Source: Chlorokybus atmophyticus (taxonomy: Eukaryota > Plantae > Mesostigma and Chlorokybus algae). From it: a stretch of 64,000 bases of DNA. The stretch lies in contig RHPI01003156.1 of the NCBI GenBank assembly GCA_009103225.1, forward strand, positions 1,225,750-1,289,749. Reading direction: 5' to 3'. The notes under the pieces were generated by a model. The model was given only the letters and a program-made list of their open reading frames with translations. It was not told the origin of the DNA and did not search any database. A program made the translations under genes and the position numbers. Shown here one piece after another: positions 29,403-38,359 of the stretch; within the stretch, counting starts at the first letter, position 1; each line of letters starts with the position of its first letter.

Positions 29403-32232
29403 ATGGTGGCGGCGGCGGCCGCGGATGGAGGATTTCCTTACCGAGAAGCTGCTATAGGTAGGGTTCTGTCGTCCTATCGTTCTGCGTTTCTATTCAGGCT
29501 TTTGGCGGCTCGCTTGCTGCAGAATGCAATCAGGAGTTCGCACTGTCCGCCGTGGTGTAGTTGCATGCATGCATGTCGTGTGCAGTGCAGCTGGCAGCTG
29601 TCTTTCACCGCATATACAAAGTCTTCGGCATTCAGCGTTGCAGCAAATTGAAGTTAAGATGTAATTTTCACTCCCTGTTCCAGAACCAAGCAGTGCGTGA
29701 ATAAGGTTGCATGCCAGTTTATTCAACCTTAACCTGACCATCTCAACCTGCAAGACAAGAACTTCGACAGCTGGACACGTGCTATTCAGTCAGCTTATCC
29801 AGCGCCAATAATTTGAGCTGAATGCAAGTGGGACGAACAGCTTGGGTCCAGATGTGAAGACATGTTTTCAAAACTCACCATGCAAACTACCTTCCTCCAC
29901 ACTGTGTAACTGTTGATGGTTGTTCACGGGCCAGGCTTCATCGTATTGGTGTACTTGTTGGAGTCCTACTTGGAACTCCGCCAGCACCGCAAGCTGCGGG
30001 ACGGCCGCACCCTCCCGCCACAGCTGCGAGGCATTGTGTCCGAGGAGAAGTTTGCCAAGTCTCGCGCTTACGGCCTTGACAAGAGGTGAATTGACTTGGC
30101 ATCTGCACACGCTGCGCACTCGGACACTCGCCCGCATATGCACAGACATTCGCAGAAGGGCACGGACGCATGGGTTTAGTGTGCTGTGTGTTGATGAATA
30201 CTGCCACCTGGTTCTAACCGCGCATGCATCACAACATGGTATGCTGCAGTACAGTTGGGTGCATGCAGCGGGTTTACCAACACCGTCGCATGTTCTACTA
30301 TCAACTCGTACGAGATTCGGTTGGCACTGCAATCTACAATTAAAGCCGCCATACCCGAGTCTGTTGTTCAGGTTTCATTGACTCATTCCAATTCTTCCAT
30401 TCGCAGTCGCCTCAGCATTGCGCACGAGGCCTACTCGCTCGTCGAGAACATCGTGCTGATTTACTACCTCCCACATCTTTGGAACCTCTCAGCAAGCGTG
30501 CTCGCGCGGTTTGGATATACTGGTTACCATGAGGTTCTTCAGTCTGTGGTGTTCCTCGGCATCACGCAAGTTCTGGAAACGGTGAGGTGACAGCAACGCT
30601 TGCATGGAAGCAAGCCAACATCGTGTGTTTTATCGTGACACTCATGCGTGTGCTGGTGTCACAGATCAGCGAGTTGCCATGGAGCGTGTACTCTACGTTT
30701 GTGGTGGAGCAACGGCACGGATTCAACAAGCAGACGGTGCGCCTATTCGTTATGGATATCATCAAGTCCCTGCTGCTGATGGCGATACTCATGCCGCCCA
30801 TCGCGGCCACCGCGATAACCATTGTCAACCGCACGGGCCCATACTTTGTGCTGTACCTGTGGCTCTTCGTGCTCGCGCTCACGCTTGTGGCAATGACCAT
30901 CTACCCAGTTTTGATCGCGCCGCTGTTTAACAAGTTTACACCACTGCAGGTATGCTGTGAGTTGGCTTCATACACACTGCATGGATACATGCATTGGCGC
31001 ATACAAGGGTTGCATATGTACATACACAGGGCACAATACTGTGCAATTGCGTGCAGTCTTTGTACAGTTGTACAGTTGTAATCACTGTCTCATGTAGTGA
31101 GTGTATTCGTGTGTGGTTATCAGGAAGGCAGTCTGAGGTTGAAGATAGAGGCGCTGGCGGCCTCGCTGAAGTTTCCACTGCGGAAGCTGTTTGTGGTGGA
31201 CGGGTCTACCCGCTCGTCGCACAGCAACGCTTACATGTATGGCTTCTTCAATAACAAGCGCATCGTGTTATACGACACGCTCATTGTGCAGGCAAGTCAT
31301 AGCTTCAGAGCCGCATTGCATTGCAGCAAGAGCGACAGCAAATTATAACCATGTTGCTCGCTTGCTGAACAACATAACTCGTGGGTTCTCCTGGGCAGGC
31401 TGAACATGAAGAGGACATTGTCGCTGTCATAGCGCACGAGTTGGGTCACTGGAAGCTGAGGCACACAGTGTATCTGTTCCTCTCAAGCCAGGTACAAGGT
31501 TACACATACAACTCGGTCTTCATGCCATGGCAAGCTGGTCATTGTGGAGAGCTCTGACACACCAAGTCAGCATCCTTATAGTTGCGTGCCTCCTTCAGGT
31601 GTTGGTGCTCACCCAGTTTGGAGGGTTCGCCGCCGTTCGTGGTTGGACCGCCCTGTTTAGAAGTTTCGGGTTTGTCGGTGACCGCCGGCCCGTCATCATC
31701 GGGTTCCAGCTGTATTCGCTCATCATTGGGCCGCTCCTCAAGCTGGTCACATTCGCAACGGTGAGATTGCATCTGCTTTTGCGTTGCACAGACTTGGTCG
31801 CGCAAGACTTCTGTACTAAATACAAAGAACATCTGCATGTGTATGCACACTGGCACACATGCGTGCAATTATGCACGCGCACACACGCGAGTATGCTCGC
31901 ACCAACATACCCACATGCCTGTGCCTGTGGGTGCGCGTCAAGATGGATGGTGAACTTGATAGACTATGAACTTGCGTACCGCGAAGAATGGTTGAGACAC
32001 GTGTGGGCGTGTTGTGCAGAATGCCGTGAGCAGAGCGTTTGAGTATCAGGCGGATGCTTTCGCAAAGGGTTTGGGGTATAGCGAGCAGCTTCAACGCGGG
32101 TTGATAAAGCTGCAAGAAGAGAACTTGTCCACCATGAACGTGGACGAGTGGTACTCTACTTACCACCACTCCCATCCGACGCTGGTGCAGCGGCTGGCGG
32201 CATTGCAAAGCGCTGAGAAAAAAGTGCAGTAA
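29403..32232 (+). CDS. STE24: CAAX prenyl protease 1 (STE24/FACE-1/ZMPSTE24, peptidase M48), 8 exons
   Basis: Exons 29403-29457, 29935-30085, 30407-30581, 30665-30949, 31124-31291, 31399-31491, 31599-31760 and 32020-32232. Motifs [29 protein letters not shown], zinc site [18 protein letters not shown] and [11 protein letters not shown]. Confidence 0.96.
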
Positions 32233-33412
32233 CCAGTTGTAGCAGTAGTGTTCGTACACAGAGTTGTGTTCGAATGGACTAGTGAGTGTTTGCGTTGATT
32301 GTCGGCTGCTGTTTGCACAGACTGGATTCCTGGTTCAGATGGTGGTTGTGTAAGCAAACCATTGATACAGCAATTACTGGTTACTGTACACTCTCAGATG
32401 GCATGTCCAGCAGTCCATGCGCAGAGGTGGAATGCCATCAATGCCTGTATTCATGGCTTGTTGCTGACGGGAGAAGAGACAGAGCTATGAGAAAATGAAC
32501 ATAAATCACATGTCCAAGTTGCTGTTTTCTTAATATCGAACTGTGCCATGATATGTGTGTTTCATGGCTTACTAGCTTGTTAGCTACACAGATTGTTGCC
32601 CACAGATCTGTGTAGCTCAAAGTTACCATCGTTCATTTGTTGAGGAGCAAAAGGTATCACAAAGAGTGACCAGTGTTGTAAATATGCGTATATCTCAACT
32701 ACATGCAAAAACAGCATCTGAACGTGCAAGCAGAGGTTTTGATGTCCATCTTTACCGCTAACACCCTTTGCCACCAGGTGCAATGCGACAAACTTACCAC
32801 ACGAAAGCAATTAGCAACTGCTCATGTATACAAGGGCGAGGGGAAGAGTGGGTGTTTAGTCAATGTCAGCAGAAATTCGTTATCATAGATAGTTGCTCAG
32901 AACATTGGCGCAATGCACATGGCAAACACATGGTATTATCCGTGAGTCCCAGTTGGCAAGTTATTGCAACACCACGAGCAATATATGTATATATTGTGCC
33001 TTACGCCGACGTGCTGAATATCAAGTTTGTGGAGGTATAAGTGCAGCTAAAAACAATTACATGCAACATTATATTCGCAAATGCTTAGGCAGAGACTGTA
33101 GCAAATCCGATGTTGACATGCATGCATGCTGCTATACACAGTCAAGACAGTCAACACACTACTGCATGTGACAAGGCAAGGTTAATATCAACCAGCCTCT
33201 TGTACAACTACGTACACACCAAGACCGATTTGGCGGGTTAAACTCAGAAGTACTTTTTAGCCATTGCCAAATCCTATCTGCTCTGCCTATGTACACAAGG
33301 AAAGGGTAAGAAATGTGATACTGCCAGCTACAAACCTCTTTTGGCTAACACCATCTGTACAGTATACACATACGCCACTTGCCAGCAGCCAACTACGGTA
33401 GTGGCGGCTGGT

Positions 33413-36400
33413 TTAATATCCGCTCTTGGTGGGGGCATACTCATCAAAATGAGTGCCCGGTGGGTCGAGGATGCCGGGTCCAACATTCACTACGCGCTCA
33501 CTGCCGGGAACAACATGCGCAGCTGTGGGCTGGCCAAAGTGCCACAGCGATGAAGATGGGACAGTGGCAGCCATAGGTGACGTTGTGGGAGAGGTGGAAG
33601 GAGCCACAGCCAGATGGGCATGACGCGTGTCAAGCTTGTTGTACAGTGTCTGCGACAAGAGGACAGGAGTGTAAGAAGGGTTACACACAAACGTGTGCAC
33701 TTTTCGAAAACATGGCATAAACGAGTAAGCCACATACCGTTGGGTCGTGTATGATGACTCCAGCGTTCTTGCCCAAGGTGCGGATGTACATGAGAGCGGC
33801 ATTTCGCTCAGCAGCTGAGTGGAATTTCAGCACTGCCGCCAAGGTTGCGTTCATGCGAATGAACAGGGAGTGGGTCGCATCCAGCGAGGAGGAACGCATA
33901 CCACAGAGCTGCGCAGGCAGTCACAGTCACAGTCAGCAAACCTATGCGTGTGCATGTACACATGTTGGGGACAGGCACTAAGAAACCATCCAGACACGCA
34001 CCAGCATGGCGTTGCTGTAGGGGTCCTGCATGACTGTCATGCCTGCCTTGGAAACTCTAACGCCTTCGGGCAGCACTTCAAGCACATGCTCCACCAACAC
34101 ATCTTGCTCAGGGACGAGATTCACCTCGAGCAAATTGACAGGGAAGCTTGAGCCGCTCAAATTGGTCGCCAGCCGCGCAACATCTGCCTCTGTTGTCGCG
34201 CTGAACTTCACAGGCTCTTGTGCAGATATCACAAACCTGCAGGCACATGCCAGTTTCAGACGAGCTCAATGCCAGCAAATGCCAAGAGGTCACCGAACAG
34301 GTCAGAAGGCTTACGTTGGGCCATCAGGCGTGGCAACATCAGCGCGAAGAATGGAACCAACATCGTTCGGCTCAGGCGCGTAGGAGGGCCCATCGGCGCC
34401 ATCCAGGATGTGAACAGTCCCATCACCCATCACGCGGCTCCACTGCGTGCGCCAACCTGGTGTGGGCGCTCCTGACTTGACTGTCACCAAGCAGCCGAGT
34501 TCTAGCCCGTTTGCCTCAGTCACCTCAAACACAAGGGTCTGAGCCTGCAGCAGTAGCCAAGAAGTGTGTTACTAGCAGGTTGCAACAGTAGCAGTTAGCA
34601 GTGCTGTTACTACAAGACCACCGCTTACAGGTGTCATGTGTGTTGTTGGCAGTGTCTCGGGTACCAGGCTTGCAGCTTCTTCGGGAACGGTTGGCTTTGC
34701 AGCCTCATATGACGGCAAGCCTGCTCCAGCTGTGAGCGCAGCACCATCTGGTCCCGCCACCAAGCCAGTCTCTGCCAGTCCTGAACAGTTGTGCAACAAC
34801 GCGTTTAGACTCTCATGCAGGAAACGCTTGAACCACAGTTGACTTACTCTCCTTTAGGCAGACACAAATGCGCAACAATCCACATGGCTACCTTGAGGAA
34901 TGACACCATGAGTATCGGACACGCTCTCTGGCAGGATTTCACTGGTGCGGGCGACCACAGGTGATGTGCTTGAGGTGATGGGTGTTGCACTTGTGGCATA
35001 GGGACTGACATAGGTACCAGTCTGCTCAGTGGTGGTGAAGTGTTCACCAGTTGCTGCATAGGGATCGCTGGTGACGCTTGTGGGCTGGTCACTGGCCAAC
35101 TCGTGGCCAGCAACAGCTCCAAGGGAACCGCCACCGAGCGCCGCAGCACCATACTTGGCACCATCACGATCGGTTGACTCATACTGGGTATCCTGTTCGG
35201 TGGTGTGATGACCCGAGAGCATGTCCTTCACCTTAGTGAACATTCCGGGCTTCTCGGTGCTTGTGGTTGAGTCGTATGCAGCGGGCTGAGCCGTGCCGGT
35301 CTGGGTGTGATGCTGACCTGGCAGCATCTCCTTCACTTTCTCAAGCATTCCAGGCTTCTCTGAGGTGGCAGTGGGTCCTGCAATGTAACCGGAGTTGTCG
35401 GTGTCAGTCAGTGCATGGCCGGCATAGGCACCAAGAGCCCCGGCACCCAATGCTGCGGCACCGAGCTTGGCCTTGGAATGCTCCTCCTGGCGCGGGTCAG
35501 TGGCAACCTCGTAGGGCTCATGGCCTGCAGAAGCGGAGATGGGTGCACCACCACCGATGTAGCCTTCCCTGTTCGGGTCTTGCTCGCGAAACTTGGACAA
35601 GTCGACTTCAGTTGCACCATAACCACCAACAGCACCGGGTTCAAGAGCAGACCCGACAGCTGGCTGCACACCTCCCATGCCGCTGCGCTCTTCCTGGACA
35701 AGGTTTTTGTCATGTGCGGGGATTGAGGCATCATAGCCGCTGGATGGCATGCCACTGCTTGGGACCTCGTTATCCTGGCCTGTAAGAGCATCGTAGGGCG
35801 CAGGGAACAGCTTGGACAGTGGATTGGAGGTTTGACGGTCATTGACGGTAGTGTCATATGAGGCAGCAGCAGGAGTCGTGTCGTGGCCAATGATGCCAGT
35901 GTCTCTGGGTACCACCTTGCCACCCTCAAGAACGTTGTAAGCAGCAGCGGGAGCATCAGACATGTGGCTTGCTCCAGTGTACGCTACTGGAGCTGCGGCT
36001 GATGTTGGTTGCTGGGTGGTTGTGTACATGGGTGGCGTGTCTGACTCAATAACAACTGGGTGCACTCGCACCTGTTGTGTGCAACAGCACAAGTCAGTAA
36101 AGCAAAATGCATAAGCTGCCAAGCAATGGCACAGATGGACTTGGGCTTACTTGTATCTTGTCGTCGCCGGTGGTCACAGTGTGGTCTCTTACATGCAGCA
36201 TCTGTGGAATTGCAGCCACCACTGGCAGGTTGATGTCCCTTTGTGCAAGTCCTGCGTCATTAACAACCCCATCTCCAAGGGTAGGTTGGTAGCCCTCGGT
36301 GTAGCCGGTGCCACGGTCAAATTGAGAAACTGGCTCAATTGGGGTGGCAACAACACCGCCTCCAAGGGTAGGCTGGTAGCCTTCGGTGTAGCCAGTGCCG

Positions 36401-37529
36401 CGGTCGAATTGAGGGACTGGCTCAGTTGGGGTGAAGCTGATGTCGCTGACATTGGTGACATCAGTTGGGTATCCAGATTCGCGGCCGACTTGGGCGCTGG
36501 TATAGTCCGGTGTTGCACCACTGGCAGGCTGCCCTGCAATGGAACTGTAGTCGCGTGCAGCAGTTGCAGCGTCAGTGCCCATGGGAATGGTTCCCGACGT
36601 GCTCAAGTCCACATTCTTGCTGCTTGCGTCAGCAGTAGGCACCTCACTGCCAGCTGTTGTGCCATAGCCGCGAGCAACAGAACTTTCATCGTCGGTGCTG
36701 GTTGACTTCTGTCCGAGGGGATTGCCTTCGGGGATTGGGGCGGTCAGGTACTCCTTGGCCTGCTGCAGAAGACCCGGCTTGGCTTCAGTTGTTGATGTTG
36801 GCGACGTGCCAGCAATATATTCCTTGGCTTGCTGAAGCAGGCCTGGCTTGGCAGCATCCTGCATGCCAGAGGTGTCGCTGCTGAGTTCGCTTGTTGTCTG
36901 GTCAGAAGGCGTCGTGCCAGTGACATACTCCTTGGCTTGTTGGAGCAGGCTTGGCTTGGTAGCCTCCGGATGTAAACTGCTGGTGTTGTCACCAGACACA
37001 CCTGACCCTGCAGACAAGGATGCTGATTGAGCAGTTGGAGGTGCTTGGCATTGTGTGCAAAACGGAGTAGAAATGCCAACAGCCGGCTGTGGCACCAACA
37101 CAGACATACCTTGTTCTGTTGTCGGGTGCTCCCCTGCAACGTAAGCCTTGGCAGAAGCTGCCACTTGCTGTATCTGCTCAAGGGCAGCAAAAGCAACATT
37201 CTTGGCAGCTTCCACTGGGGAGACGCCACCGGCAACGCCTCCTGCAGCCGTCTTGACATGACCAGCCTCAGCTTGAGTGGGCTGCGGGATGTAGTCGCTG
37301 CCGGCTGGGGCGTCATACCGAGCAGGTGCCTCAGTGACAACTGTGAAGCCCCAACCAGACAATGATGTTAGTGCAAGTTGACCCTCAAATCACTCACTGC
37401 GAGCAGCTTTGCAACTAAGCAGTGTGTGCGCATGTTACTCCAAATGCCAACTAGCTGCATTTCAAGGCTGCACTAACCTTCCTCAGGTCCTCCAAATCCC
37501 TCTCGCGTCCTCCATGTCGTATCCTCCAT
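33413..37529 (-). CDS. ~1148-aa protein: long LEA/dehydrin-like low-complexity region with K-segment-like repeats fused to a SCAB-type Ig-PH module; 8 exons
   Basis: Exons 37478-37529, 36151-37340, 34892-36071, 34629-34780, 34315-34544, 34002-34236, 33738-33908 and 33413-33649; all are GT-AG and phase-consistent. SCAB-like QWSRV...GADGPSYAPEPNDVGSILRAD and LCGMR...VLKFHSAAERNAALMYIR. K-like EKPGMLEKVKEMLPG. Confidence 0.85.
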
Positions 37530-38359
37530 GCTGCTCAGCTGGACTACTAGATCAAACCACTGCACAGATTACGCACAGATCACGTACAGAACGCTTCCTC
37601 CCAAATATGCTGTCGCGTTTCCGCTCTCTCTGCTATCTGCAAAGCCGAGCAGCAAGCTGTGAGATGACACGACATGCGCTAACTATCAACATACCAGATG
37701 GACCATGCAACAAGTACAGCCACAGCGTAAGACAACTAACAGGCGCAAGACTGTGCTGTGCGCACACCCATACACACGCACGTACCATCATACATGCATG
37801 CACAAGCCAGCCCAATACCAGTTCTGTCATAACAACAGACACCAGGACACCCGCCCATACCACACACCAACCAGGTTAACCAGGCCACACTCACCTTGCA
37901 ACAATCGCCGCGTCCAACTATTGCCTCAACTTACGCTTTGCAGCGGAGCGCAATGCCACTGCTTATGTACACAACCCTCAACTTTCAGGAAATCCTACTA
38001 GATTGTATGGACCTCGAGAGCCTCGACTTGAAGCGTCGGTTCAGCGTGGGTTCCCCAACAAAGTTTGCTTGGAAAACCGCACAAACCCTGTCGCGGACCT
38101 CGAAACCGAGTTCGTGGGATCAGCACGGAAACTCAACGTCGTGATTCTGTCAGCTTGCGGATTGAGTCAGGACCGGAGGCCGGTTCGAGAATGTCTATAA
38201 CCGGTAGTGACCTGCACAGAAGGGTGGACTGATTGTTGAGGACCGGCCCAAGAATCAATGCCAATCGGACTTTCAGCGTGTTCGACGCGTCGATCTGCGG
38301 ACGTGGCAGACGAGCCTAGCCAGGCGAGTTCCGCGCCGAAATTCGAGAGCGAAACCGTT

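Follow-up and report, generated by a model that had tools for sequence, protein, structure and literature searches.

Chlorokybus atmophyticus (Streptophyta, class Chlorokybophyceae) transcribes a gene whose predicted product joins diverged repeats resembling dehydrin K-segments, set in a long N-terminal region that looks disordered, to a C-terminal fused Ig-PH module of the type found in the actin-bundling protein SCAB1. The gene is the one minus-strand gene at positions 33413-37529 of a 64,000-nucleotide (nt) stretch of contig RHPI01003156.1 (assembly GCA_009103225.1, positions 1,225,750 to 1,289,749; hereafter the window). An initial annotation, made from the letters of the window alone, had described this gene, its strand and both of its ends as we find them, with exact coordinates. 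We consider the chances even that the protein is a late embryogenesis abundant (LEA)-like peripheral membrane protein that combines K-segment-type units with an Ig-PH docking module, the paired K-like units in its exon 4 being homologous to dehydrin K-segments.

The modules of the protein are known, but their combination is a new domain architecture. The initial annotation knew of no description of this architecture, and our literature search likewise found no paper on such a fusion. Specifically, the papers naming both SCAB1 and dehydrin were, among the matches listed, flowering-plant stress-transcriptome or actin-factor studies with no report of a fusion; the sole match combining Chlorokybus and dehydrin has the word "dehydrin" only in its reference list; and a search with the gene identifier Chrsp23S03698 found no paper.

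The K-like units of exon 4 match dehydrins

The dehydrin likeness is strongest in two 15-residue peptides, K1 and K2, which together with their linker form a cassette within coding exon 4 (Table 1). Both peptides had been placed at exactly these coordinates by the initial annotation, which had noted the His residues trailing each; these trailing residues are QHH for K1 and HH for K2. The resemblance of both peptides to the dehydrin K-segment proved to be well beyond chance. The Pfam Dehydrin model (PF00257) matches exon 4 at 30.5 bits (E 6e-7) and the whole protein at 28.1 bits (E 3e-6), against a gathering cut-off of 30.6 bits, and the match spans K1, the linker and K2 (profile positions 94-154). 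Compared to the canonical K-segment consensus EKKGIMDKIKEKLPG, K1 has 9 identities in 15 positions and K2 has 7.

An exhaustive phmmer search with exon 4 (393 amino acids, aa) as the query against 1.84 billion representative proteins returned six matches: the protein itself and five small proteins with library-wide E values of 8e-5 to 4e-4. All five of the non-self matches are dehydrins by Pfam (39-81 bits), including named dehydrins from Malus and Lithospermum. The 9/15 score of K1 equals that of several K-segments in these five dehydrins, and the PGQHH ending is common to both. No orthologue of the disordered region was found among the 1.84 billion representatives. A motif pattern drawn up post hoc from these segments occurs only in this gene among the six frames of the window, and in 0 of 50 shuffles.

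Two observations concern individual matches. One of the dehydrins adjoins a PPR gene, as expected of plant DNA. The best non-self match (P0002, locus L001 377-637) is an 86-aa metagenomic dehydrin on a 1-kb contig with the K-segments QKPGLMDKIKQMIPGG, in which position 3 is Pro and position 12 is Met, unusual residues that the Chlorokybus units also have.

Three further units, N1 to N3, lie nearer the N-terminus and follow the pattern (T/A)KP(S/G)LLQQAKEY(V/I/L), while K1 and K2, the most dehydrin-like of the five, follow EKPGM(L/F)xKVK(E/D)ML(P/S)G and then His. The two groups are related, including their flanks (YIAG..PT..T.E.KPG): 25 residues align at 60% identity, with an E value of 3e-5 within the protein; on these alignments, the five units are a single diverged repeat family. 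Their hydrophobic moments (0.38-0.45) agree with that of the canonical K-segment (0.42). In the single-sequence AlphaFold2 (AF2) model, the K cassette is coil nearly throughout, apart from a short helix in K2; the model, with a predicted local distance difference test (pLDDT) score of 51.3, was too poor for a fold search, and it fits disorder but proves little. We also noted that the KPGLLQQAKEY region (36739-36960, minus strand, aa 95-200) gives a faint match to the Pfam HSP9_HSP12 model (E 0.11, 13.4 bits), far under the cut-off.

The protein is dehydrin-like, not a dehydrin in the strict sense. As a whole it is acidic (isoelectric point, pI, 4.7), with a grand average of hydropathy (GRAVY) of -0.34 and 10% Gly, and its composition is not that of the very hydrophilic hydrophilin type, rich in Lys and Gly (GRAVY below -1, Gly above 6%). 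It is also not wholly disordered, since a 210-aa Ig-PH fold module stands near its C-terminus. The five dehydrin matches have GRAVY values of -0.64 to -1.45 and 9-20% Lys. We do not file the protein as a dehydrin because of its low Lys content (3%), its GRAVY, its size (115 kDa), its folded domain and a score just short of the Pfam cut-off.

Homology or convergence of the K-like units

The simplest reading of the K1-linker-K2 unit is homology with land-plant dehydrin K-segments, in which case the motif would predate land plants and would have existed within a larger multi-domain protein. A more far-reaching scenario, which we put forward only tentatively and think rather unlikely as a whole, is that the K-segment is older than land plants, having been a diverging repeat family in an Ig-PH-anchored protein of the deepest-branching streptophyte alga; embryophyte dehydrins would then descend from such regions, and the Ig-PH module would predate its recruitment into SCAB.

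We considered that the K-like units might instead be convergent, belonging to a lineage-specific scaffold in which they serve as linear motifs for partners or as simple amphipathic helices, with no ancestry or function shared with dehydrins; on this view the core of the function would reside in the Ig-PH module, for instance as a domain for protein-protein interaction. Several observations are as this explanation would have them: the Dehydrin score does not reach the curated cut-off, most of the Lys residues are gone from three of the five units, and the bulk composition is not that of a dehydrin. Moreover, reviews tabulate dehydrins as a land-plant feature that streptophyte algae lack (PMC7289719, Table 1), none turned up when seven chlorophyte genomes were searched by motif (PMC5415607), and the Ig-PH look-alikes described below are short stand-alone proteins in distant eukaryotes, although these are a lead only. 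The data on algal dehydrins have been described as fragmentary, consisting only of immunoreactive bands of 15-120 kDa (PMC10358736). In contrast, the similarity exceeds the amphipathic core (G at position 4, LPG and the trailing QHH), it covers two units and a polar linker, like the K-phi-K arrangement of dehydrins, and the exhaustive search matched only dehydrins besides the protein itself, with library-wide E < 1e-3. We treat convergence as possible but on the doubtful side, and homology of the paired units is the simplest, yet for so short a motif still a tentative, reading.

A SCAB-type Ig-PH module without the actin-binding parts of SCAB1

The C-terminus is the full fused Ig-PH module of the SCAB type, as had been proposed from its exons in the initial annotation. 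Both Pfam models score above their cut-offs (Table 1), and residues 828-1035 are collinear with residues 13-220 of the crystal structure of SCAB1 Ig-PH (4DIX) in a gap-poor alignment of 208 residues (E 3.6e-15, 59 bits), with single exons matching the expected portions of the 4DIX chain. Likewise, the actin-binding and coiled-coil parts of SCAB that were said not to be visible were not detected by us: SCAB-ABD and SCAB_CC had no Pfam match at E <= 1 over the whole protein, and neither did SCAB-ABD on the N-terminal pieces.

Published studies of SCAB1 locate its actin binding in the N-terminal actin-binding domain (ABD), with bundling requiring coiled-coil dimerisation (PMC3426786, PMC10730221), describe its PH domain as atypical and as binding inositol phosphates weakly (PMC3426786), and report that phosphatidylinositol 3-phosphate (PI3P) acts on the coiled-coil domain and not on the PH domain (PMC10730221). 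Because the ABD and the coiled coils are absent here, actin binding is not transferable from SCAB1 and would not be expected of this protein, and the cytoskeletal half of the membrane/cytoskeleton tether suggested by the initial annotation falls away. That the PH domain binds membranes is likewise a weak proposition, because the SCAB1 PH domain is atypical and weak in its lipid binding, PI3P is reported to act on the coiled coil, the Chlorokybus sequence retains only 3 of the 7 basic residues that SCAB1 has in the aligned beta1-beta2 stretch, and the Chlorokybus module is acidic (pI 4.9). The single-sequence AF2 model of the module (pLDDT 39.5) was too poor for a fold search.

Relatives of the module were sought in two ways. 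Word-index searches among long proteins (613-1950 aa) and, up to E 10, among mid-size proteins (195-621 aa) returned only the protein itself; these searches are blind for the Ig-PH module, because SCAB1 scores 59 bits against it, yet no SCAB-type protein scored in the mid-size search, and they are uninformative on whether the fusion exists elsewhere. In a language-model search (Atlas), the look-alikes of the module (P0001 aa 825-1040, window 34544-33738) were short hypothetical proteins of eukaryotes (haptophytes, streptophytes and apicomplexans) that bear IG_AIR9, SCAB-Ig or SCAB-PH signatures, and a lower-scoring cyanobacterial cluster was annotated as SCAB-Ig. The module may thus be older and wider than the "plant-specific" label of SCAB, although these look-alikes are only a lead.

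We also considered that the protein might be an ancestral or divergent SCAB-like cytoskeletal protein, with an unrecognised actin- or microtubule-binding region in its disordered N-terminus that links filaments to membranes. The SCAB type of the module would suit such a role, as would a weak similarity between the Ig part and the A9 domain of the microtubule-associated protein AIR9 (E 0.011) and the IG_AIR9 signatures borne by the Atlas look-alikes. Nevertheless, we judge this explanation improbable, given the missing SCAB-ABD and SCAB_CC matches, the dependence of SCAB1 actin binding on ABD and coiled coil in the studies cited above (PMC3426786, PMC10730221), and an N-terminus with no resemblance to any Pfam cytoskeletal domain.

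Transcript evidence for a single gene

Open reading frames and splice motifs define a coding sequence (CDS) of nine exons for 1114 aa, which starts with ATG at 37529 and stops with TAA at 33413-33415 on the minus strand, and in which all introns are GT..AG introns of 78-137 nt. The spliced translation is identical to P0001, which is EukProt EP00898 Chlorokybus atmophyticus, jgi/Chlat1/3510/Chrsp23S03698; the gene model is already public, but the gene is undescribed.

Two transcript contigs, X1 (3649 nt, from a 2021 study) and X2 (3763 nt, from a 2013 study), each contain all eight CDS junctions in a single molecule, and X2 adds a poly-A end at 33163 and an extra intron in the 5' untranslated region (UTR). 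These contigs come from public assemblies of short reads whose source runs are marked "RNA?" by guess only; since X1 and X2 are without every intron, they are cDNA-derived. Because contigs of two independent studies have all eight CDS junctions, the gene gives rise to one mRNA and is not two genes. Thus, the single gene and single transcript of the initial annotation hold, and the two separate genes that it allowed cDNA might reveal do not appear in the assembled short-read contigs. The transcript was found in ordinary cultures, in contigs whose depth is no measure of expression level. A merger of neighbouring dehydrin-like and Ig-PH genes by the reader or by annotation, for which there is no evidence and only the prior suspicion raised by an unusual architecture, is very improbable and was rejected, as far as assembled short reads allow, since the contigs of two studies hold every junction from 5'UTR to poly-A, the frame is open throughout and the K cassette lies inside a 1180-nt exon.

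With respect to splicing variants, intron 3 has two in-frame donors, 36193 and 36151, and both X1 and X2 use 36151, not 36193. Intron 2 (37008-37109) is 102 nt long, in frame and stop-free, such that its retention would give 34 additional residues; the contigs splice it out. A third run with the same organism label, X3, yielded fragmentary contigs, some of them identical to the window. One X3 contig differs at 12 of 282 positions over the tail exon and 3'UTR (33368-33649), and a short one over exon 5 (34629-34780), with a very high word depth (1127), has two differences. These differences may reflect another Chlorokybus strain, a cryptic species or a related transcript.

Features of the gene and its surroundings

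Residues 1-824 form a low-complexity region that looks disordered: 52% of them are Ala, Thr, Gly, Ser or Pro, the pI is 4.5 and the GRAVY is -0.47. The composition is that given by the initial annotation for this upstream region, whose length is 824 aa and not the roughly 850 aa stated there. Besides the K-like units, the region contains two 21-residue Gly/Ala-rich segments, AK(L/Y)GAAALG.G.LGA.AGH.L, that flank the K1-K2 pair and are 50% identical over 38 residues. Hydrophobicity within the disordered part is highest in these two segments. We rejected a transmembrane reading of them, as hydropathy over 19 residues peaks at 1.2, short of the usual 1.6, and over the whole protein no signal peptide or transmembrane segment was apparent by eye or hydropathy. 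In Pfam, the Gly/Ala segments, the tandem 25-mers, the tail and the first 95 aa had nothing near a cut-off.

The C-terminal tail that follows the Ig-PH module is 78 aa long. Its last 15 residues (33416-33460, minus strand) end in ...THFDEYAPTKSGY, the DEY..P core of which is loosely like the dehydrin Y-segment D[EQ]YGNP, a likeness that may be due to chance.

The convergent neighbour, on the plus strand with its 3' end facing that of the gene, is a Ste24-type CAAX prenyl protease (30587-32232) with the domains Peptidase_M48_N (30587-31081, E 6e-39) and Peptidase_M48 (32014-32232, E 4e-11). No functional link between the gene and this neighbour was evident.

Table 1. Coordinates in the window of the features of the Chlorokybus gene and its product
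Feature	Position	Strand	Remarks
K1	35316-35360	-	aa 618-632; EKPGMLEKVKEMLPG, then QHH; overlaps Pfam Dehydrin match (aa 619-669)
K2	35211-35255	-	aa 653-667; EKPGMFTKVKDMLSG, then HH
K-like unit N1	36916-36960	-	aa 111-125; TKPSLLQQAKEYVTG; related to K1 and K2 by internal alignment
K-like unit N2	36808-36852	-	aa 147-161; AKPGLLQQAKEYIAG; internal alignment
K-like unit N3	36739-36783	-	aa 170-184; AKPGLLQQAKEYLTA; residues 158-182 are 60% identical to 609-630
SCAB-Ig domain	34173-34451	-	aa 856-922; spans intron 34314-34237; Pfam PF16709, 33.0 bits (cut-off 27.6); aligns with 4DIX
SCAB-PH domain	33741-34091	-	aa 950-1035; spans intron 34001-33909; Pfam PF17684, 50.3 bits (cut-off 26.4); aligns with 4DIX
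5'UTR exon 1	37895-37946	-	extends at least this far upstream; 50 loose X2 letters beyond 37638 match 37897-37926 onward; donor AAG|GTGAGT at 37895/37894
5'UTR intron	37637-37894	-	GT at 37894, AG acceptor at 37638-37637; joined across in X2
CDS exon 1	37478-37529	-	exon itself starts at 37636 in the 5'UTR; junction 37478/37340 in X1, X2 and X3
CDS exon 2	37110-37340	-	junctions in transcript contigs; translation identical to P0001
CDS exon 3	36151-37007	-	three N-terminal K-like units and tandem 25-aa repeat pair; junction 36151/36071 in X1 and X2
CDS exon 4	34892-36071	-	aa 381-773; contains the K cassette; query of the exhaustive search
CDS exon 5	34629-34780	-	final linker stretch
CDS exon 6	34315-34544	-	splice model and contigs
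CDS exon 7	34002-34236	-	splice model and contigs
CDS exon 8	33738-33908	-	splice model and contigs
CDS exon 9	33413-33649	-	Pro/Ser/Thr/His-rich C-terminal tail, aa 1037-1114, and TAA; no Pfam match
3'UTR to poly-A site	33163-33412	-	X2 ends at 33163 with a T run on the plus strand
Tandem 25-mer pair	36262-36423	-	EPV(P/S)QFDRGTGYTEGYQPTLG(G/D)GVV; aa 290-314 and 319-343; no Pfam match
Gly/Ala-rich segment 1	35409-35471	-	AKLGAAALGAGALGAYAGHAL; aa 581-601; 50% identity with segment 2; protein-wide hydropathy maximum
Gly/Ala-rich segment 2	35097-35159	-	AKYGAAALGGGSLGAVAGHEL; aa 685-705; internal alignment

Proposed function

In the role proposed here, that of a LEA-like peripheral membrane protein, the K-like units would, as in dehydrins, have no fixed structure in solution and would fold into amphipathic helices on an anionic lipid surface or upon withdrawal of water. 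Once folded, they would provide many weak, reversible contacts, while the folded Ig-PH module would provide one specific docking site, whether lipid head group or partner protein, that would position the disordered region at a particular membrane. Both the membrane association and the role in stress are inferences. As Chlorokybus is a subaerial alga, a role in desiccation or cold stress, as suggested by the initial annotation, is plausible.

Several points weigh against this proposal. The Dehydrin score is just under the Pfam gathering cut-off, the composition is unlike that of dehydrins (Lys 3%, GRAVY -0.34, pI 4.7), and a 15-residue amphipathic motif can converge. Lipid binding by the PH domain of SCAB is weak and atypical, and most of the basic residues in the beta1-beta2 stretch are lost in Chlorokybus. 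Moreover, modelling without an alignment gave no confident fold (Ig-PH pLDDT 39.5). We counted one ACGT-core promoter motif in the 1 kb upstream compared to 1.8 expected, which gives no support for control of the type exerted by abscisic acid, although this is a weak test. Finally, we found no orthologue outside Chlorokybus, so conservation cannot be used as an argument.

Implications

The gene is of value mainly because its K-segment-like sequence is the first from a streptophyte alga to be well supported, and because it has an Ig-PH module freed from actin bundling. It places dehydrin-type K-like units, significant across the whole library and transcribed, in an alga listed as without dehydrins, and the origin of the K-segment becomes directly testable in a cultivable organism. 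Likewise, a SCAB-type Ig-PH module without the actin-binding part separates the function of the module from actin bundling, and suggests that the "plant-specific" SCAB came about when an ABD and coiled coils were joined to an older Ig-PH module. If the membrane model is true, the protein would be a LEA-type disordered protector with its own targeting domain.

Comparison with known proteins

The closest likeness of the N-terminal region is to the dehydrins (LEA group 2), for example the acidic SKn types such as ERD14 and COR47, with which it shares two adjacent K-like units, a polar linker and His after PG, and the amphipathic moment of the Chlorokybus K pair is that of the canonical K-segment. 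In contrast to these proteins, the Chlorokybus protein has about 5-10 times their length, carries a folded domain, lacks an S-segment, has units with Pro as residue 3 and Met as residue 12, has less Lys (3% compared to 9-20%) and a higher GRAVY (-0.34 compared to about -1 to -1.5), scores just under the Pfam cut-off, and is hosted by a streptophyte alga.

Yeast Hsp12 (PF04119) is LEA-like, disordered in solution and helical on membranes. The likeness to it consists of the faint KPGLLQQAKEY match and of the proposed behaviour, disordered in solution and helical on lipid; Hsp12 differs in being a small single-domain protein, and we claim no homology from a match that is far below the cut-off.

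With SCAB1, the Chlorokybus protein shares the same fused Ig-PH module. Whereas SCAB1 has an ABD and coiled coils, the Chlorokybus module is acidic, keeps 3 of the 7 basic beta1-beta2 residues, stands behind an 824-aa disordered region and is followed by an extra tail of 78 aa.

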